Positions 9,406 through 58,945 of a stretch of 59,040 nt of DNA are shown piece after piece. The notes beneath the pieces were generated by a model. That model was not told the origin of the DNA and searched no databases. It saw only the letters and a program-made list of their open reading frames with translations. The stretch's first letter is position 1; each line of letters opens with the position of its first letter. The stretch lies in contig NC_068991.1 in assembly GCF_001194135.2 (NCBI RefSeq), positions 2,980,750-3,039,789 of the forward strand, given 5' to 3'. This DNA comes from Octopus bimaculoides. Lineage: Eukaryota. A program made the position numbers and the translations under genes.

Positions 9406-9722
9406 TTTCTTCTTCTAATTCATTATATATGCATGTATCGAGTGATGAGCTTCCATTCGGTGTAGTTAGTGTTGTGTTTGCGTTGCCTTGCTTTACCCAA
9501 ATCTTGTTTCATGGGCATGAGGAATATCATGCTTGGTTTAAAGATATTCTGCAATCGTTGCCATCATCTCTATCTTCCACCATCACAACTGCTTCACCGT
9601 TTACCTTACCTTTATATTACTACATGCCTGTAATAGGAACCTGTTTCTACCAGAATTTTTCTTATAAATCAGCGTTGGAGGGAAGGGATTATGCAATTGT
9701 CTTTGCATCACCACACACACAC

Positions 9723-9782
<60 letters not shown>

Positions 9783-9835
9783 ATATATATAAGTATATAT
9801 ATATATATAAGTATACATATATATATATATATAAG

Positions 9836-9868
<33 letters not shown>

Positions 9869-10200
9869 ATACATATAGACATATACAAACATTACCTCTG
9901 AAATGCCCTGTCTACAAAACGGGTAGGTTATACCCTAAAGTGCGGCTGTGAACCCCTTGTGTGAGGAGGGGGGTATTTTAATTAAGAAAAGCAACATCAT
10001 TAGAAATATACACAAAAAACCCCCAAAAACTAGAAATTAATAAATCTCTCTCTTTCATACATACACACACGTACACATGCACGCATTTGTCATATTCTCA
10101 TCTCCCTTTCAACAAACCATGCAATTTTATTGTAAAAACTAGTTTACCGGAAACAAAATGAAAAAATGCAACAACAGATATATTTATATTTATATATATT

Positions 10201-31678: not shown

Positions 31679-32204
31679 TATTGTGGAATAGTGATGTTTG
31701 TAGATTTGTAGTGGTACTCAGGTGGTATAGTATGGGTAATGCTACTGTTGTGGTACTTACGGTTTTGTGATGTTGTTGTTGTTGGTGTTACAGTACTGCT
31801 AATGTGGTCGTACTAAGAGAATTAGTTTTGTGGTTGCTGTTGCTGTAGTATGTGTCGTAGCTGTAGTGTAGCTAGGGAGGGACCTAGGAGGCGGCCCGCC
31901 TCCGCCCTGAACGACGCTTTTATTTTTGGGTCTCCTGTATAATTTTGTACAAGCAGCGCAGGGCCGAGGGTGGAGAGGCAAACTCTAGAGCTGCCCCGGA
32001 CGGCACACACTCTGGCTGCGCCACTTTGTGGTGGCGCTTGTTGCTGTTGTGAGAGTAGTAATAGCAGCAGCAGCAGCAGTAGTAGTAGTGAGGAGCTCGT
32101 CTAGTATTGCTTGTTGCTGATTTTGGCAATGGATGTTGGTGGTGGTGGAGGTGATGGCGATGTTGGTGTGGTCGGCGGCGGCGGTGGAAGTGGTGACGTT
32201 GTTG

Positions 32205-32236
<32 letters not shown>

Positions 32237-32779
32237 AGATGAAGAAAAAAGTTAAATGCTTAAGTTGTCTGATCATGCTGAAACTTCTATAACGTCTGCG
32301 CTGGGGTACGGCACTACCCACTTCCCCACTCCATACACATGCATCTATAGACACACACACACACACACACATACCTACACATTTTCTACCCAACAATACT
32401 TTTAAACCACCTTCTTCGCCCTCCTCCAATTCACTCCACCGTTACCGCATTGATTTATCGATCACATGATATATACGATTCGATCTCTCCTGTTACAATC
32501 TACACCTCTTTCCCCCCCCCCCNNNNNNNNNNNNNNNNNNNNNNNNNNNNNNNNNNNNCCCCCGTCACTCTCCCTCACAGGCAAACACATACGTATAATA
32601 CATACATAGATACATACATACATATATACATATACATACACGGACACTTATATATGAACATACACATACACATGCAAGCACACATACACACACTCTCTCC
32701 TTCTCAACCTCCCCCATCACCTTTACTTTGACAACAAAATACTCCTTTTCAAAATGTTAAAGCAGACGTGTTTGGTTAG

Positions 32780-41395: not shown

Positions 41396-41578
41396 TTAAT
41401 TGATGAAAAAACCTAATAAACAAGTCATACATATTCTCTTTCTCTCTCTCTCCATTGAGTTCATCAAATCAATTTTTTTTCATGCATGTGAAATATTTTT
41501 GTATGTTTGCAATATATGTCCATCATAATGTGTATTTGATAAATATATTATGTATGTATGTATGTACGTATGTATGTA

Positions 41579-41609
<31 letters not shown>

Positions 41610-41644
41610 ATAAAGAATGTGTCTGTCAGGAATAACTAATTCAC

Positions 41645-41662
41645 TTTTCTTCTCTTTTACAG
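41645..41662 (+). promoter_or_regulatory. Splice acceptor of an intron upstream of the ASL-like CDS
   Basis: ttttcttctcttttacag|GTTG, preceded by a (TATG)/(TG) microsatellite. This makes the ORF-track start at 41617 likely intronic. Confidence 0.7.
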
Positions 41663-41874
41663 GTTGCCTGACCAACTGGAAGAAATTTGACCATCTTCAT
41701 CCTGTTATTGTAATAGTTTCATTTATTTCATTTTTGTTTTATTTTTCCATTTTATATTGTTTTTTTTTTAATGACCATTGTTTTGTCTTCCAACTCATTG
41801 TCTTGGAAACAAGCCATCACATCTCACTGATCCCCTCCGTATTGTGTTCGTTGTTCAATTCTACAAAAACCATC

Positions 41875-43524
41875 ATGCAGAGCCTTTACCGTTCTTTCAT
41901 GAAATCATTCATTATGATCATCTTCACTGTGACTCTGCTGCTGTTGATTTTCGTTCTGGGTCCAATGAGTGCTTTCTATAGCAAGACAAGAGTCTCAACA
42001 CAGACGTCGCCCGTCAAGAAGACTCCAAAATCAAATCTCACCAACAGCACCCGCTTCAGACATAATTTTACCAAAAGCTTCCATGAAATATTGCATTTGA
42101 CTCTGAAAGATGCCATCACTCAACCGTCTGTGGTAAATAGTTCCAAGTTCCATGGAACGCATCTCATAACTTCTCCAAAAGACAGTCTACAGAACTATGG
42201 CATTGCTCAAACTGTTGATTACAATCTCTTCAAAGAGGACATCGAATGCAGTAAGGCGTATGCCAAAAGCCTGACAAGGGTCGGTCTCCTCACGAGAAAA
42301 GAGTGTCATAACATTTTGGATGGTCTTGAAATGATTGGAATGGAGTGGGAAAATGGGACGTTCGACTTGAAGCCAGATGATAAAGATGTCCATGCTGCCA
42401 ATGAACGGCGCCTGGCAGAGTTGATTGGTTCAGCAGCAAATAAGTTAAATGCTGGCTGGGATCGCAATGACCAGTTGGCGACAAGTCTTAGACTGTGGCA
42501 AAAAAATGCCATCAGTGTTCATAAGAATGATCTTATTGAGCTGTTGGGTGTGATCACTGAGCGTGCAGAGAAGGAGCTTGGTGTTCTTATGGCTGGCTAC
42601 ACAGTAATGCAGCAAGCTCGACCAATCAGATGGAGTCACTGGTTGCTTAGCTTTGGTTGGAAAATCAAAAGAGATATTGAAAGACTTATGGATCTACTTT
42701 CACGAGTTGACTTGCTGCCACTTGGAAGTGGGGCTCTAGCAGGAAACCCTTTTGGGGTTGACAGAATGTTTTTGGCCAAAGAGCTTGGGTTTGCTGACAT
42801 CATAGAAAACAGCATTGATGCTGTCAACGACCAAGACATTATCTTTGAATACGTTGCCTGGGCGTCGATTATGGCAGCTCACTTCCACAATTTGGCTAAT
42901 GACCTTATTTTATACAGTACGAAAGACTTCGGGTTTGTTGAACTTTCCCATCCATTACACAATGTCCAAAATAATGCCAGTAGCTTTTCAAATGAGAATG
43001 CTCGCAGCTTGGAAGAAATCCGTGGTAAAACCAATCACATCTTTGGGGAATACACTGACATGTTGAGTGTCTTGAAGGAATTCTCAAACCTACACAACAA
43101 TGATTTTTTATCAAATGCCAAAGGAATGTTTGACATTTACAAGACAATTGTGAATGCTTTACCAATAACCAGAGCAATCCTTTCTTCTTTGAAAATAAAC
43201 CCAGACAAAATGGAAGCTTCCCTCAGTGAAGATATGTTATTGCCAGACTTGGAATATTACATGGTACGAAAGGGCTTACCTGCTGACAAGGCGCACAGCC
43301 TGGTTGGAATGTGTGTTAGATTGTCACAGAAAAAGGGGGTCACTTTTTCGAAACTCTCTTTGGCTGAGTTGAGATCTGTCAGTCCTGTTTTTGACCTCGA
43401 TGTAAAATCTGTATGGAATTATAACAACAGTGTAGAGCAATACACACTTCCAGGAGGGACGAGTCATGCCAGTGTACAGCTTCAAATAGATCAGTTGAAG
43501 AAATGGATGTCGTTCCAAAGATAA
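41875..43524 (+). CDS. ASL: Argininosuccinate lyase-like protein (fumarase/ASL superfamily), intronless CDS, predicted catalytically inactive, with N-terminal signal/anchor
   Basis: The ORF aligns colinearly with animal ASL (SKAYAKSL, DVHAANERRLAELIG, RNDQ, IRWSHWLLS, LPLGSGALAGNPFGVDR, DLILYSTKDFGFVELS, YMVRKGLP, SVEQYTLPGGTS). The start is placed at aaccatcATG 41875, the first in-frame ATG after a strong acceptor at 41662. It is an ASL-like paralog, not necessarily the ortholog. Confidence 0.92.
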   Translation: MQSLYRSFMKSFIMIIFTVTLLLLIFVLGPMSAFYSKTRVSTQTSPVKKTPKSNLTNSTRFRHNFTKSFHEILHLTLKDAITQPSVVNSSKFHGTHLITSPKDSLQNYGIAQTVDYNLFKEDIECSKAYAKSLTRVGLLTRKECHNILDGLEMIGMEWENGTFDLKPDDKDVHAANERRLAELIGSAANKLNAGWDRNDQLATSLRLWQKNAISVHKNDLIELLGVITERAEKELGVLMAGYTVMQQARPIRWSHWLLSFGWKIKRDIERLMDLLSRVDLLPLGSGALAGNPFGVDRMFLAKELGFADIIENSIDAVNDQDIIFEYVAWASIMAAHFHNLANDLILYSTKDFGFVELSHPLHNVQNNASSFSNENARSLEEIRGKTNHIFGEYTDMLSVLKEFSNLHNNDFLSNAKGMFDIYKTIVNALPITRAILSSLKINPDKMEASLSEDMLLPDLEYYMVRKGLPADKAHSLVGMCVRLSQKKGVTFSKLSLAELRSVSPVFDLDVKSVWNYNNSVEQYTLPGGTSHASVQLQIDQLKKWMSFQR

Positions 43525-43757: not shown

Positions 43758-43795
<38 letters not shown>

Positions 43796-44166
43796 CACGT
43801 ATATACATACATATATGTATATTTATGTATGTAGCTATGTATACATAATTATGCATTTATGTGTGTGTGTATGCATATATATATATATATACACACTCAC
43901 ATATGCATATATTTATAATACCCACCCACCCACACTCACACACAATAGCTATATAACTAAACAAATAGTTTTCAGCAACCCTCACCCTGACTCTCACTGG
44001 AATTGAACCCACCTTTACGTGATTCCATTCTCTTCTAACATTTTACTGCTTCTATTATTTTGTTTTATAACCTCAGTAATTATTGTTGTTCTTGTTGTTG
44101 ATGTTGTTCTCTGTTGACTTCTTTATGGTGTTGCTTCCAGTTTTTTTCTCCCCACCCACCTCCTTT

Positions 44167-44200
<34 letters not shown>

Positions 44201-44234
44201 TGTGTTTGTGTGTGTGTGTGTATGTATATGTATG

Positions 44235-44275
<41 letters not shown>

Positions 44276-44304
44276 GTATGTGTGTATATATATATATATA
44301 TATA

Positions 44305-44357
<53 letters not shown>

Positions 44358-46829
44358 NNNNNNNNNNNNNNNNNNNNNNNNNNNNNNNNNNNNNNNNNNN
44401 NNNNNNNNNNNNNNNNNNNNNNNNNNNNNNNNNNNNNNNNNNNNNNNNNNNNNNNNNNNNNNNNNNNNNNNNNNNNNNNNNNNNNNNNNNNNNNNNNNNN
44501 NNNNNNNNNNNNNNNNNNNNNNNNNNNNNNNNNNNNNNNNNNNNNNNNNNNATATATATGTATATATACATATACATATATATGTGTATATATATATATA
44601 TATGTATATGTATATATATGTGTGTGTGTGTATATATATATCTGTATATATATATATGTATGTATATATGTGTGTATGTATGTGTGTGTGTGTGTGTGTG
44701 TATCAAAACAAGAGATTGGAAGAAATATTTGGTATTATTCACCATTACATATGTTTTATTTACTAATAGGAGTTACGAAATTATACATATAAGAAAAACA
44801 TGTAAGTTATCTCCTAGTTGGATTATAACCATATATATATATATATGTATATATATATACACCTGTTTTTCACTGTCTCTTTTGGTTTATTTTTTGTTTT
44901 TCTCCTTCCAAAGAATTCACCAAAACTGTAAGATATTAACCTTTGCATTTTTCGCAACTGTTTTCTGCTTCCAAAACCACCAAAACACTCCCAACAGCAT
45001 CGAACACATTTAAACATAAGCCGAAGACAAAGTTGAAAAAGATGGAATGGTCATCGCTGGAATGCCTTTTGATCATAAAGTCAGCCCCAACCATCTTACC
45101 CAGAGCTAAGCAACAACACACTTGAGTTATTTTTTTGCGCATGTTCTGTGTGTGTGTGTGTTTGTGTGAGTGTTTGTGTAAACCAGAAAGATACACAGCA
45201 AAGCTGACTTTGCAGGGTTCCAATTCAAAACATCAAGCTTCATAAATTCTGCTACAAGACACAAATCTAGAATATTTCTGCTGATAAAATACATAAGCAT
45301 TGAATTATTAAACGCCATTTTATTGGCTGTCCTCATCTGCCACATCTCTGGCCTTCTACCTAAATTATAATTCCTTATTTTACAAAAAAAGACATTATAT
45401 TCTCAACAAAGCCTGACCCCTTTTTTGTTTTTTCTTTATCTCTACTGTGGTTATTTCATGATATCTATTTTGCTAATAACTTGAAACCCCATTATTAAAA
45501 AAGAGCCCTAAACAACAGACTATCATGTTTTCTTGTCATATAAATTCAAAGCCTAGAATCTGTCTAAAAGAATTGTTCTTTCCACCTGGTTGTAATGTTG
45601 ATTGGAAATCTATTAGCAAACCACGTTTGAAACGGTTACAAATCCCAGTTGAAATTGCTTTGCATGAATATCTCATTGTTATTGTTGTTGTTGTTGTTAT
45701 TGCTGGTGTCATTATTGTTGTTGTTGTTGTTGTTGTCTGATATAAAGCTGTTTCTCCGATATGAAATTAATATTCATATCGTTAGAATGATTTCCCTTTA
45801 AAAAGAAAACAACAAAAAAATAACTTTAAAACTTAAATCTGCATTTATTTTGTTCCAACATTGCATGCTAGCAAAACACTGATCAAATTTTACCGTGCTC
45901 CCACTGCCTCTGTCTACAGGGATGAATTACAACCTCATCTAAGAATGTGGGGTAGAGGGATTGAGAAGAAGGTTTTCAGTAGATTTATTTTCCATCGACA
46001 TAATGCTAAATGGTTACACAATTGAGACAGATAATCTTGCTTCAACACAATCCTTTGTGAAATTCAACAACCTGGACCATTGTTCTTTTTTGTGTTTGTT
46101 TTTTTATTAATTTGGATTTATCTAGTTTTTGTATCTTTCAAATTATCAGCTTGTCAAGAGGTGAATAATTCCCTAAGCATTGCTCTCTGAATCTGCAAAA
46201 CCATCAAAGCCCCTCTACCCCTGTACAAAGGCAGCAGACAACTTCGGAGAGGTTTAATTGCGTTGCTAATAACCTGGTTTGTCAAAAAGGCCTGAAATTC
46301 ACATTGTCTTCCTAATTTTTGTTGCTGCTTCAAAGCATTTTCCACTTTTGTGTCACTCTTCAGAAAACCATGAATGTTACAGCTTCCTGTTTCTGTTCTT
46401 TCCAAAGAATTTTTTTCAACTTTCATGTCTTTGTATTCTTGGCTGTTGAAAAAATGCCTGATTGATGTGTCTTGTTATTTTTGTCTCCTCTTAAAAAAAC
46501 TTTTGACCGTTTGAGCCAACAAAGAAATCAGAGCTATGAGAAATATTCCAAATGTTCCTCAAAATCACACTGTACCATCTTAAAAAAATAAAGGACACAC
46601 TTTGCATAATGTAACCCTAGATACACCATGTCTGGAAGAATAAAAAAAATATAAAGACTGCACGATCATGTCTTGAGAGCCTTTCAATCATAGGCTAGCT
46701 GCGTATGGACTGGCTAGCAACAACAACTGCAACACCAACAACTACAAGGAAGAACATGCTGGAATATGTAATCTTAAATACACAGCTCTTTGCTGAGAAC
46801 CAAGGCCAGGATAGCCATTAATAATGGAT

Positions 46830-50054: not shown

Positions 50055-50225
50055 CATTTCTATATTTAAGAGATGAGGAATTAAGTACATTATTTACATT
50101 TGACGGATATTTGTCCTCATCTTTGTTGTTAACACAACGTTTTGGCTGATATACCCTCCAGCCTTCATCAGGTGTCTTGGGGAAATTTCGAACCTGGGTT
50201 CTCATTCCTAGGGCATTTTTCTAAT
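50055..50225 (-). mobile_element. SINE family C, 3' part; its head appears at 50951-50979, beyond the LINE
   Basis: Reverse complement of 51100-51230. Confidence 0.8.
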
Positions 50226-50227
50226 GT

Positions 50228-50952
50228 GAATACCCATCAGAGTGTAAGTATCTTGAGAGAAAAGCTGAACATTAGAAACATCAGTTGTGGTGTGCAAGAG
50301 AGACGATTGCGCTGGTATGGACATGTGGTGAGAATGGATGAGGATAGCTGCGTGAAAAAGTGCCACACCCTAACANNNNNNNNNNNNNNNNNNNNNNNNN
50401 NNNNNNNNNNNNNNNNNNNNNNNNNNNNNNNNNNNNNNNNNNNNNNNNNNNNNNNNNNNNNNNNNNNNNNNNNNNNNNNNNNNNNNNNNNNNNNNNNNNN
50501 NNNNNNNNNNNNNNNNNNNNNNNNNNNNNNNNNNNNNNNNNNNNNNNNNNNNNNNNNNNNNNNNNNNNNNNNNNNNNNNNNNNNNNNNNNNNNNNNNNNN
50601 NNNNNNNNNNNNNNNNNNNNNNNNNNNNNNNNNNNNNNNNNNNNNNNNNNNNNNNNNNNNNNNNNNNNNNNNNNNNNNNNNNNNNNNNNNNNNNNNNNNN
50701 NNNNNNNNNNNNNNNNNNNNNNNNNGGCACATAAAAGACACCATTTCGAGCGTGGCCGTTTTCGTGCGGGTGACACGTAAAAGCACCCACTACACTCTCT
50801 GAGTGGTTGGCGTTAGGAAGGGCATCCAGCTGTAGAAACTCTGCCAAATTAGATTGGAGCCTGGTGTTGCCATCCGATTTCACCAGTCCTCAGTCAAATC
50901 GTCCAACCCATGCTAGCATGGAAAGCGGACGTTAAACGATGATGATGATGAT
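50228..50952 (+). mobile_element. 3' fragment of the same RTE-type LINE family, spanning an N-gap
   Basis: ERRLRWYGHVVRMDEDSCVKKCHTL before the gap; 3'UTR ggcgttaggaagggcatccagc...gttaaacgatgatgatg after it. Confidence 0.85.
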
Positions 50953-56854: not shown

Positions 56855-58945
56855 CCTCATCATCATTTAACGTCTGCTTTCCATGCTGGCATGGGTTGGA
56901 TGGTTTGACTGGAACTGGTTCCAGTCTGATTTGGCATGGTTTCTATGGCTGGATGTCCTTCCTAATGACAACCACTCTGAGAGTGTAGTGGGTGCCTTTT
57001 ATCTGTCATCAGCACCGGTGCTTTTACGAGTCACTGGCAACAACTACAATTTCACTTGGTTTGACGAGTCTTCCCAAGCACAGCAAATTGCCAAAGTTCA
57101 TGATCACATACCATTCCCTCCGTGAGACCTGACATTTGAAGATCATGTTTCATCGCTTTGTCTCATGTCTTCCTGGGTCTACCTCTACCACAGTTTCCCT
57201 CCACAGTTAGAAATTGGCTCTTCTTCACACAGCTTTCCTTGTCCATACGTATCACATGACCATACCAGTGCATTCATCTCTCTTGCACACCACATCTGAT
57301 GCCTCTTATGCCCAATTTTTCTCTCAAGACACTTACACTCTGTCTTACATGCACATCCTGTGGAGTATACTATATTTCTGTCTTTCGAGCATTTGCATGT
57401 CCTCTGCAGTCACAGCTCATGTTTCACTGCCATGTAGCATGGTTGTTTGCACACAGGCATCATACAATCTGCCTTTCAGTCTGAGGGGAAGACCCTATTT
57501 GTTGTCAACAAAGGTAGGAACTCTCTCAACTTTGCTCAGCCTATTCTAGCAGCTATGCTCTCAGAGCATCCCCCTCCACTGCTGATTTGGTCACCTGGGT
57601 AACGACTGCTATCAACTACTTCTAGGTATTGCCTTGGCATTTCATGGAATCTGTTTTCTGTATATTTCTAGTGTTTATTGTACCTATGCATCTGTCACAC
57701 ACAAAGACTATCTTCCCTGTTAACCTTCCTTTGATATTACTGCACATCTTATGTATCCATAGCTTGCACCAGGTACACCTTATGGGGTCTCTACCTATGC
57801 TTTTTCTACATGTCAAGCAGGGCCATCTACCCTGAAGGGATTTGTGATTTGACTGCTTTCCTACTAAGACTTTGGTCTTTGCTAAATTACCTCTAAGGCC
57901 TTTTGATTCTAGACCTTGCTTCCCCTCCTGAAATTTTTGTCTCCAGTTCTGGTAGTGATTCAGCTATAAGAACAGTCATCAGCATAAAGGAGCTCCCAGG
58001 GGCAACCCAACTTAAAATTCCTCTATTATTGCCTGAAGGACTATGATGAACAAAAGGGGGTTGAGGACTGACCCATGATGAACTGAATTCATTACAATTC
58101 TTGTTGCCAACCCTCACCTTATGAACAGCATCCCTGCACATGGCTTGTACAGCTCTCACCAGCCACTCCTCTATCCCTAGTTTCCACAGTGACCGCCAGA
58201 TAAAGGAGCAGGTGACTCTGTCGAAGGCTTTCTCCAAGTCAACAAAAGCCAAGTACAGGGGTTTATCTTTGGCTATGTATTTCTCTTGCAGCTGCCTTAC
58301 CAGAAATATAGCGTCAGTGGTGCCTCTCCCTGGCACAAAACTAAACTGCATCTCATCTAGACTAACTCTCTTCCTAATTAGTTGAGCTAAGACCCTCTCC
58401 TTAACTTTCATCACCTGATCCAACAATTTGATACCTCTGTTATTATTTCTATCTAAATCATCACCTTTACCTTTGTAGCAGTTGACTATGGTGCTGCTAC
58501 ACCAGTCATTGGGCATGATTCCTTCGTGTACAATCTGATTAACTATATGGTATCAAGCTACAGTCTATACGGATAGCTGGTCTTTCTCTTGGACCCACTT
58601 TAGGCAAACTCTCCTTCTGCCATGAGTTCTCTACATTTAGCAGCCTTTTGTAGTGGCACTTCCAAGACTCTTTCTTTGCAGTCACCAGCTGCAACTGAAC
58701 CATCATCCGTGTGAATGCACTTCTTTCCAACAACATCATAATTTTACTTGGCACACTCTCTTGCAAACCGAAACACTTCAAGCTGCTGGCCCTCATGCTG
58801 CAGAACATTGGCAAACTTCTTCCTTTCTGCTTCCCCTGTGGCTGAGTATACCTGTTCCTAGCTTACCTTCTTGCTACTATCACTCTTCCAGTCCCACTTC
58901 TTTGCTCTAATAGCCCTATCAACTACACCGTTCCGCCACCATCTC
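56855..58945 (-). mobile_element. Degenerate, 5'-truncated RTE-type LINE (RT, Cys-rich segment, C-terminus, 3'UTR, (GAT)n tail)
   Basis: Frameshifted peptides WWRNGVV; YKGKGD..RGIKLLDQVMKV..QFSFVPGRGTTDAIFLVRQLQEKY..LAFVDLEKAFDRV (57893-58516); IRCTWCKLWIHKMCS..FVCDRC; and RLRWYGHV-like C-terminus. The 3'UTR ends in catcatcat on plus at about 56857-56866. Confidence 0.92.

Follow-up and report, generated by a model that had tools for sequence, protein, structure and literature searches.

The window analysed here, a 59,040-nucleotide stretch of Octopus bimaculoides DNA, carries at 41875-43524 (plus strand) an uninterrupted gene of 549 codons and a TAA stop that encodes a paralogue of argininosuccinate lyase (ASL). 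It is probable, in our judgement, that the gene is a functional, cephalopod-specific ASL paralogue whose octopod form is a membrane-tethered pseudo-enzyme with the ASL fold and a binding or scaffold role. The evidence lies in the replacement of catalytic motifs within an intact open reading frame (ORF), in purifying selection and in a conserved hydrophobic anchor. A sequence-only reading of the window had already described an intact ASL ORF with a dismantled active site; the membrane anchor and stem, the retrogene-type copy and the intact decapodiform ortholog go beyond it.

A single-exon argininosuccinate lyase paralogue

The locus lies on O. bimaculoides chromosome CM046611.1 (assembly GCA_001194135.2) near 3.02 Mb, where the coding sequence (CDS) is identical, and the 549-residue translation is identical to the database protein P0001. 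The cephalopod host supposed from the letters alone is therefore correct. The intact ORF and every motif that had been quoted were recovered at their coordinates, including the Val codon at 42604-42606 and the N-A-S sequon at 42973-42981. The interval marked at the time, 42448-43125, covers the active-site part of the gene, which as a whole extends from 41875 to 43524. Databases label the gene only 'argininosuccinate lyase-like' or 'argH', and the literature on ASL in cephalopods or octopus and on ASL pseudoenzymes yielded nothing on it.

The gene product matches the Pfam families Lyase_1 at 8.7e-57 (193 bits, cut-off 27) and ASL_C2 at 9.6e-15. It aligns end to end with the PDB sequences of human ASL and duck delta2-crystallin at about 1e-119, and its top PDB and database matches are exclusively ASL or delta-crystallin. 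In an AlphaFold2 (AF2) model the predicted local distance difference test (pLDDT) score exceeds 90 across most of residues 112-549, and Foldseek superposes the model on duck delta2-crystallin (1HY1) with a template-modelling (TM) score of 0.89. By profile and by fold the protein belongs to the fumarate lyase/aspartase superfamily, and the earlier expectation that the ASL fold is kept holds. Identity to canonical ASLs of any phylum is about 47% for the octopod copy and about 61% for the decapodiform copy. An exhaustive scan of 1.84 billion representative proteins found nothing between the paralogue cluster and the canonical ASLs.

In each of five genomes or contigs a single exon holds the whole CDS of the anchored paralogue. 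In O. bimaculoides the canonical ASL (P0012) is spread over 16 tblastn segments and about 14 kb of CM046625.1, corresponding to at least 16 coding exons. An intronless CDS on CM046611.1 beside a multi-exon parent on another chromosome marks the gene as a retrogene-type copy. Within 1.7 kb 3' of the stop codon, where the flanks consist of microsatellites, neither AATAAA nor ATTAAA is present. Any poly(A) remnant or target-site duplications are expected to have eroded, since the gene is older than the octopod/decapodiform split.

By far the longest ORF of the window is the mechanical ORF at 41617-43524 (plus strand, 1.9 kb). All other N-free ORFs reach at most about 210 codons, and at a GC content of 36-40% an ORF of this length is not due to chance. 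Its first 86 codons (41617-41874) form an in-frame upstream extension rich in Phe, Ile and Ser, owing to which ORF callers give 635 residues and not 549. The ATG at 41617 was rejected as the start codon. This frame is interrupted by a TAG in a contig (L004) from a second Octopus species, so the extension is not conserved, and the conserved start codon is the ATG at 41875.

Replacement of the active site

Substitutions were counted over the 166 alignment columns with at least 97% invariance across 168 canonical metazoan ASLs, with human residue numbers taken from the alignment to 1AOS. The four octopod copies come from O. bimaculoides, O. sinensis, the second Octopus species and Argonauta hians. 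In octopods 67 of the 166 columns have changed (64 in the window protein), compared with 11 in the decapodiform orthologs. The changes are concentrated in the active site. In the window protein they affect 45 of 67 invariant columns in the N-terminal arm, the C1, C2 and C3 motifs and the 320s segment, but only 19 of 99 elsewhere (odds ratio 8.6, Fisher p = 6.5e-10), so that 80 of the 99 columns outside the active-site segments are retained.

The octopod substitutions in the arm, C1 and C2 include R12H (in the WGGRF arm), H108N, T109A, R111W, S112D, H160V and Q165R. Downstream they include R236Q, the entire Ser loop, K287N, K288E, D291R, Y321H, K323N, Q326L, K329A and R385D. The catalytic and substrate residues of a functional ASL are thus absent (His160, the Ser281/Ser282 loop, Lys287, Arg111/Ser112, Tyr321, Lys323, Gln326 and Lys329); Arg113, Asn114, Asp115, Gln116, Thr159 and Glu294 are retained. 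About nine cationic residues for holding the tricarboxylate substrate have gone from the pocket, which has gained Trp, Val, Leu and Ala. The fumarate-lyase signature GSxxMxxKxN, which we take to be PROSITE PS00163, was matched as a regular expression in none of the four octopod copies and in 175 of 176 other full-length matches, including the decapodiform orthologs. The loss of the catalytic machinery, already suspected from the sequence, is confirmed by these counts, which support the reading as a pseudo-enzyme.

The catalytic Ser of this superfamily sits on a mobile loop. The former Ser loop differs in sequence and length between Octopus and Argonauta, and its pLDDT falls below 50 over residues 360-374. 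Among PDB entries for duck delta2-crystallin, H162N is titled 'inactive mutant', and an S283A mutant structure is also listed; the latter variant was reportedly used for trapping substrate. Because both His160 and the Ser loop are lost in octopods, and a single H162N change is titled 'inactive mutant', established enzymology makes canonical beta-elimination by the octopod protein appear very unlikely.

Selection on the remodelled protein

Orthologous CDSs were available from Argonauta (L001), the second Octopus species (L004, L005) and two decapodiforms (L002, L003), and the ratio of non-synonymous to synonymous divergence (dN/dS) was computed by the Nei-Gojobori method. Between O. bimaculoides and Octopus sp. 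dN/dS is 0.022 (dS 0.32), and between O. bimaculoides and Argonauta it is 0.038, with dS, about 1.5, near saturation. The ASL-like domain alone gives 0.008 and 0.025, respectively. The catalytically intact decapodiform pair has a dN/dS of 0.031 (dS 1.33). O. bimaculoides, O. sinensis, O. vulgaris, a further Octopus species and Argonauta all have the ORF intact. Decay of a pseudogene-like kind, which the sequence-only reading had named as a refutation, is not seen among orthologs at dN/dS 0.02-0.04. The Octopus-Argonauta protein distance is in fact smaller for the paralogue (0.084) than for canonical ASL (0.125).

The replaced residues are themselves conserved. In 52 of 64 cases the residue that took the place of an invariant one is the same in Octopus and Argonauta, and C1 and C2 together show no amino-acid change beside 15 synonymous changes against Argonauta. 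In the same comparison the ratio of non-synonymous to synonymous proportions (pN/pS) is 0.047 for the former active-site segments without loop and arm and 0.046 for the remaining ASL domain. It rises to 0.50 in the former catalytic loop (residues 357-371), which also has a 5-7 residue indel, and to 0.26 in the old N-terminal arm. The new pocket walls are held as tightly as the core, relaxation being confined to the former Ser loop and the N-terminal arm. It had been proposed that selection keeps the fold but not catalysis. The fold is kept, but the replaced C1, C2 and 320s segments are just as constrained, so selection preserves more than the fold. Loss of catalytic motifs combined with purifying selection is found here, and it fits the general definition of a pseudoenzyme in a published review (PMC10211241).

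The decapodiform ortholog and the history of the gene

The decapodiform ortholog is represented by the Acanthosepion/Sepia pharaonis 'argH' cluster of CAE1276449.1 (P0003, P0129, P0130) and by a second species. It shares with the octopod gene the anchor (RSFMKSF-LMLIFVITLLLLIFVLGPMSA), the stem, the conserved sequons and the single coding exon. It differs in having intact HTGRSRNDQ, GYTHLQRAQP, GSSLMPQKKNPD and STYNRDLQEDK motifs, and none of its 11 changed columns is at a known catalytic position. By its residues the decapodiform copy would be a membrane-tethered ASL that still looks catalytically competent.

Contigs of about 2.3 kb from the decapodiform ortholog occur in Logan assemblies from many runs. 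In L002, L006, L009, L011 and L014 an upstream exon is spliced on 41 nt before the ATG, and comparison of the 5' 270 nt reveals at least two alternative first exons of the 5' untranslated region (5'-UTR). The unspliced acceptor, ...TTTTTCAG/ATCCGAGC, is kept in L010, L012 and L013. The coexistence of spliced and unspliced 5'-UTR contigs indicates that the decapodiform ortholog is transcribed and spliced. L004 and L005 were rejected as Octopus transcripts, being collinear with genomic flanks and having an unspliced acceptor and microsatellite ends.

In a neighbor-joining (NJ) tree on Kimura distances the octopod and decapodiform paralogues are sister groups in a clade with 100% bootstrap. The clade shares the derived residues N25G, F242Y and T352S at otherwise invariant positions. 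Its deep placement outside Bilateria is probably the result of long-branch attraction and is not interpreted. In Tajima relative-rate tests with four outgroups, 84-89 octopod-unique changes stand against 21-30 decapodiform-unique changes (p at most 4e-7), and in the NJ tree a long octopod stem branch bears nearly all the excess change. From these sequence comparisons we infer a burst of remodelling on the octopod stem, followed by a freeze. As the anchor and the single exon are common to octopods and decapodiforms, the anchored retrogene predates the octopus/cuttlefish split.

Membrane anchor, stem and topology

The Kyte-Doolittle mean over 19 residues is 2.8-3.0 at residues 11-29 (2.79 in the window protein, whose second-best stretch reaches 1.09) and at most 1.2 elsewhere in the protein. 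AF2 places a helix at residues 2-34 with pLDDT 79-93. The anchor has no amino-acid change among octopods despite saturated dS, and the decapodiform segment is nearly identical. As in a type II signal-anchor, there is one N-terminal segment able to span the bilayer and, by a heuristic judgement, no good signal-peptidase site; the sequence GPMSA/FY has Met at -3. A search with the N-terminal 111 residues for the origin of the anchor returned no matches, the word-index method being insensitive here.

Behind the anchor comes a stem of about 75 disordered residues, where pLDDT stays under 50 at residues 36-63 and 77-111. Each octopod protein has 6-7 N-x-S/T sequons, compared with a mean of 1.9 in canonical ASLs. 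The seven paralogue sequences all share three of these at the same alignment positions, two in the stem and one at residue 160 (NGT or NKT). The hypervariable former Ser loop also bears one, NAS in Octopus and NKT in Argonauta. The charges flanking the helix in decapodiforms (+3 on the N side, +1 on the C side) have the type II pattern. Because the sequons are conserved and these charges fit, a lumenal or extracellular (type II) orientation of the domain is predicted with a slight preference.

Comparison with known argininosuccinate lyases

Canonical metazoan ASL (EC 4.3.2.1; human 1AOS, octopus P0012) shares with the octopod paralogue the three-domain helical fold, with Lyase_1 and ASL_C2. 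The residues in common include RNDQ, GYT, LPLGSGALAGNPF, WSHW, Glu294 and the C-terminal SVEQY..GGT. The octopod paralogue differs in its N-terminal anchor and stem and in its single coding exon, as opposed to at least 16. It is also without GSSLMPQKKN, His160, Lys287, Tyr321, Lys323, Gln326, Lys329 and the WGGRF arm, and 40% of its near-invariant positions are replaced.

Avian and reptilian delta1-crystallin (1HY0, 1I0A, 1U15) is likewise an inactive ASL paralogue with the same fold, selected for a non-catalytic role. Its C1, C2 and C3 motifs are nearly intact, however, whereas those of the octopod protein are lost wholesale; in an indirect comparison of PDB sequences, delta1 chains fall short of or exceed delta2 by no more than 2-4 bits in the C1-C2 and C3-320s segments, while a literature search on the inactivity of delta1-crystallin yielded no text. 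The inactivity of delta1-crystallin maps to the N-terminal arm and a loop, and the 'double loop mutant' entries 1U15 and 1U16 fit this picture. Delta1-crystallin is soluble and cytosolic and derives from a tandem, intron-containing duplicate. In contrast, the octopod protein is anchored, retrogene-structured and of independent origin, in a clade that is confined to cephalopods and stands apart from vertebrate ASLs, without common descent with the sauropsid delta-crystallin duplication. In mammals, ASL is described as serving in the nitric oxide synthase (NOS)/citrulline-nitric oxide (NO) complex as a scaffold independent of catalysis (PMC10296609). There an active enzyme moonlights, whereas the octopod protein is a dedicated, anchored and catalytically stripped paralogue.

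Proposed role and alternative readings

The gene may have arisen as follows. An ASL mRNA would have been retroposed, and the copy would have gained the anchor and the stem along with a 5'-UTR intron. The anchored lyase, probably active, would have persisted in the coleoid ancestor. In stem octopods the active site would have been remodelled in a burst that replaced His160, the Ser loop/Lys287 signature, the N-terminal arm and most argininosuccinate-binding cationic residues, and strong purifying selection would then have frozen the new state. The octopod protein would still form an ASL-type tetramer, as suggested by the 80 of 99 invariant columns kept outside the active-site segments. Four long stems would let all N-termini of such a D2 tetramer reach one membrane. 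The domain, lumenal or extracellular, would be a type II N-glycoprotein that binds or scaffolds through its conserved, remodelled pocket and surfaces. The loss of cationic residues from a pocket that is strictly conserved suggests that the protein binds another, less anionic partner or has an architectural function only. A bolder version, which we regard as tentative and on balance doubtful, is that coleoids evolved a secretory-pathway or cell-surface urea-cycle lyase, which octopods turned into a glycosylated, tetrameric ligand-binding ASL-fold 'receptor' or scaffold, with a remodelled pocket, depleted of charge, that would recognise a new partner.

Several points weigh against a selected, lumenal pseudo-enzyme with a binding role. 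No transcript or protein evidence was found for octopus, where the Logan contigs look only genomic; function in octopus rests on the evidence of selection because these contigs give no proof of transcription. The dN/dS against Argonauta is imprecise, as dS is near saturation, and the loop alignment around residues 357-377 is uncertain. The flanking charges of the octopod helix (+2 on the N side, +3/+4 on the C side) run contrary to the type II orientation under the positive-inside rule, and no new cysteine pairs were seen in the paralogue. The remodelled motifs may be conserved only because the structure or the tetramer interface constrains them, and not for ligand binding, and other residues may support a novel chemistry.

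Some of these points would fit a domain that faces the cytosol, as a tethered scaffold or regulator on the endoplasmic reticulum, the mitochondria or the plasma membrane. It could act in an arginine/citrulline-NO metabolon, or form hetero-tetramers that localise or damp canonical ASL. ASL active sites are assembled from three subunits, so mixed tetramers would be regulatory, and with 80 of 99 invariant columns kept outside the active site the assembly surfaces may be intact. The greater C-flank charge in octopods favours an N-out/C-in topology, no disulfide pattern of the lumenal type has been gained, and a structural, non-catalytic role in the citrulline-NO-cycle NOS complex is described for mammalian ASL (PMC10296609). 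We nevertheless consider a cytosolic location rather unlikely. Two stem sequons and one domain sequon are fixed in position in all paralogues although the stem otherwise evolves fast, and the hypervariable former Ser loop retains one in Octopus as well as in Argonauta; unless the protein is glycosylated, this pattern has no easy explanation. The charges beside the decapodiform helix agree with type II, and with only about 47% identity, hetero-tetramers with canonical octopus ASL are doubtful. The remodelled pocket might alternatively be that of a new enzyme, which catalyses another reaction or processes a less anionic substrate with relocated residues. Its replaced residues are as conserved as the fold core, without non-synonymous change in C1 and C2, and Arg113, Asn114, Asp115, Gln116, Thr159 and Glu294 are kept. 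The burst-then-freeze pattern is typical of neofunctionalisation, and some 'pseudoenzymes' have migrated catalytic residues, according to a pseudoenzyme review (PMC10211241). The odds of this are nonetheless low, given that the catalytic-Ser loop is the least conserved part (pN/pS 0.5, indels, disordered in AF2), that the general acid/base candidates His160 and Lys287 have become Val and Asn, and that no alternative catalytic constellation is identifiable in the sequence.

The co-option proposed by the sequence-only reading, a soluble delta-crystallin-like structural or refractive protein of lens, cornea or skin, is not supported by the comparison and is now very improbable. The fold is common to both, the gene is conserved although apparently inactive in catalysis, and the recruitment of ASL as a crystallin has precedent (PMC10211241). 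A conserved transmembrane anchor and a disordered, sequon-bearing stem of about 75 residues are not crystallin features, however, and would poorly suit a soluble, densely packed lens protein. The wholesale motif replacement is also unlike delta1, whose catalytic motifs are nearly unchanged, and the origin is independent and of retrogene type. The cephalopod lens crystallins known so far go back to GST and ALDH and not to ASL, and no literature was found that links ASL to the cephalopod lens. Least probable of all is that the gene is a processed pseudogene in decay, or else an artefact of assembly or annotation. The gene is a single-exon copy of a multi-exon one, it has microsatellites and retroelement debris on its flanks, and an octopus transcript was not found among Logan contigs. 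Against this stand the ORF intact in five octopods, dN/dS of 0.02-0.04 at dS up to about 1.5 and an evolution slower than that of canonical ASL; the intact orthologs and the dN/dS effectively refute it. A membrane-tethered pseudo-enzyme with a binding or scaffold role is therefore the reading we prefer.

Features of the gene and its surroundings

Table 1. Coordinates of features of the anchored ASL paralogue in the window
Feature	Position	Strand	Basis and remarks
Candidate 3' splice acceptor of a 5'-UTR intron, TTTTACAG/G	41655..41662	+	Inferred; kept in Octopus sp. L004, parallels the decapodiform acceptor
Complete single-exon CDS of the anchored ASL paralogue	41875..43524	+	Orthologous CDSs intronless in Argonauta and two decapodiforms
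N-terminal tail MQSLYRSFMKSF with conserved Arg6 and Lys10	41875..41910	+	Alignment; no non-synonymous change among octopods
22-residue signal-anchor/transmembrane helix IMIIFTVTLLLLIFVLGPMSAF	41911..41976	+	Hydropathy, AF2; 0 non-synonymous/16 synonymous vs Argonauta
Disordered Ser/Thr/Lys-rich stem	41977..42207	+	Sequons N54, N57, N64, N88; pLDDT <50; dN/dS 0.12-0.20
Degenerate ASL N-arm remnant SKFHGTHLI, replacing KLWGGRF	42142-42168	+	Within the stem; pN/pS 0.26
ASL-fold domain (Lyase_1 and ASL_C2)	42208..43521	+	Pfam, PDB matches, AF2/Foldseek; dN/dS 0.008 vs Octopus sp., 0.025 vs Argonauta
NGT sequon at residue 160 (NKT in decapodiform orthologs)	42352..42360	+	Same column in 7/7 paralogues and 14/168 canonical ASLs
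Remodelled C1, NAGWDRNDQ (canonical HTGRSRNDQ)	42448..42474	+	Alignment; 0 non-synonymous/8 synonymous vs Argonauta
Remodelled C2, GYTVMQQARP (canonical GYTHLQRAQP)	42595..42624	+	His160 to Val244 at 42604-42606; 0 non-synonymous/7 synonymous vs Argonauta
Former catalytic Ser loop/signature LSHPLHNVQNNASSFSNENAR, now Asn/Ser-rich and length-variable	42943..43005	+	Signature absent; NAS sequon at 42973-42981
Remodelled 320s substrate-binding segment NLHNNDFLSNAK (canonical STYNKDLQEDK)	43087..43122	+	pN/pS 0.05

Microsatellites of the (TATG)n and (TA)n type lie on both sides of the gene, at 41549-41609, 43762-43891, 44170-44357 and 44552-44703. Runs of N occur near 12.7-13.4, 16.2-17.0, 44.3-44.55 and 50.4-50.7 kb, several of them assembly gaps inside such repeats, and short-read contigs of the orthologs also break at microsatellites of the (TATG)n/(TA)n type. 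When the Argonauta flanks were compared with the window for synteny, the only sequences in common were dispersed repeats. In the Argonauta contig L001 a tandem repeat of about 42 bp (TTTACCACAGTATCTGATCCTTCCTCCATATTTAACCCTCTC) at 9720-10000, directly 5' of the start codon, cannot be aligned to the Octopus 5' region, indicating turnover of the 5'-UTR or promoter beside a frozen CDS.

A 631-residue isoform annotated in O. vulgaris, P0122 (CAI9730668.1), departs from the ORF after ...LEYYM, at about 43260 of the window (ATG/GTACGA). It continues into a 13-residue tandem repeat, (IAVANSRHREGLQ)n, and this alternative C-terminus is probably an annotation artefact. Elsewhere in the window, a reverse-transcriptase fragment at 57893-58516 (minus strand; Pfam RVT_1, 3.8e-11) is a retroelement remnant, at a guess of non-LTR type. 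An ORF at 50142-50375 (plus strand), which adjoins the N gap at 50376-50730, has no Pfam match and ends in ...RRLRWYGHVVRMDEDSCVKK, presumably resembling the C-terminus of LINE ORF2 proteins. A 169-codon ORF at 31920-32429 (minus strand) has long His and Gln runs, in a region (32-36 kb) where the local GC content is 43-44%. It may belong to a neighbouring gene as an exon, or be mere low-complexity DNA.

Significance

New here are the anchored retrogene architecture, the pair of intact and remodelled orthologs and the conserved new pocket. ASL is the textbook case of an enzyme recruited for a non-catalytic purpose, through delta-crystallin, and the octopod locus is a second, independent recruitment by a different route: retroposition, then a membrane anchor, then the dismantling of the active site in one lineage and its fixation in the new form. 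For reconstructions of arginine, urea and NO metabolism in octopus, it follows that this 'argininosuccinate lyase-like' gene should not be counted as ASL. Since the cuttlefish-type copy is intact and the octopod copy is not, the pair is a natural experiment in the passage from enzyme to pseudo-enzyme, and it reveals what residues the ASL fold itself requires, catalysis aside. If the bolder version were true, an ASL-fold 'receptor' would constitute a class without described precedent, with the intact cuttlefish ortholog as its natural before/after counterpart.

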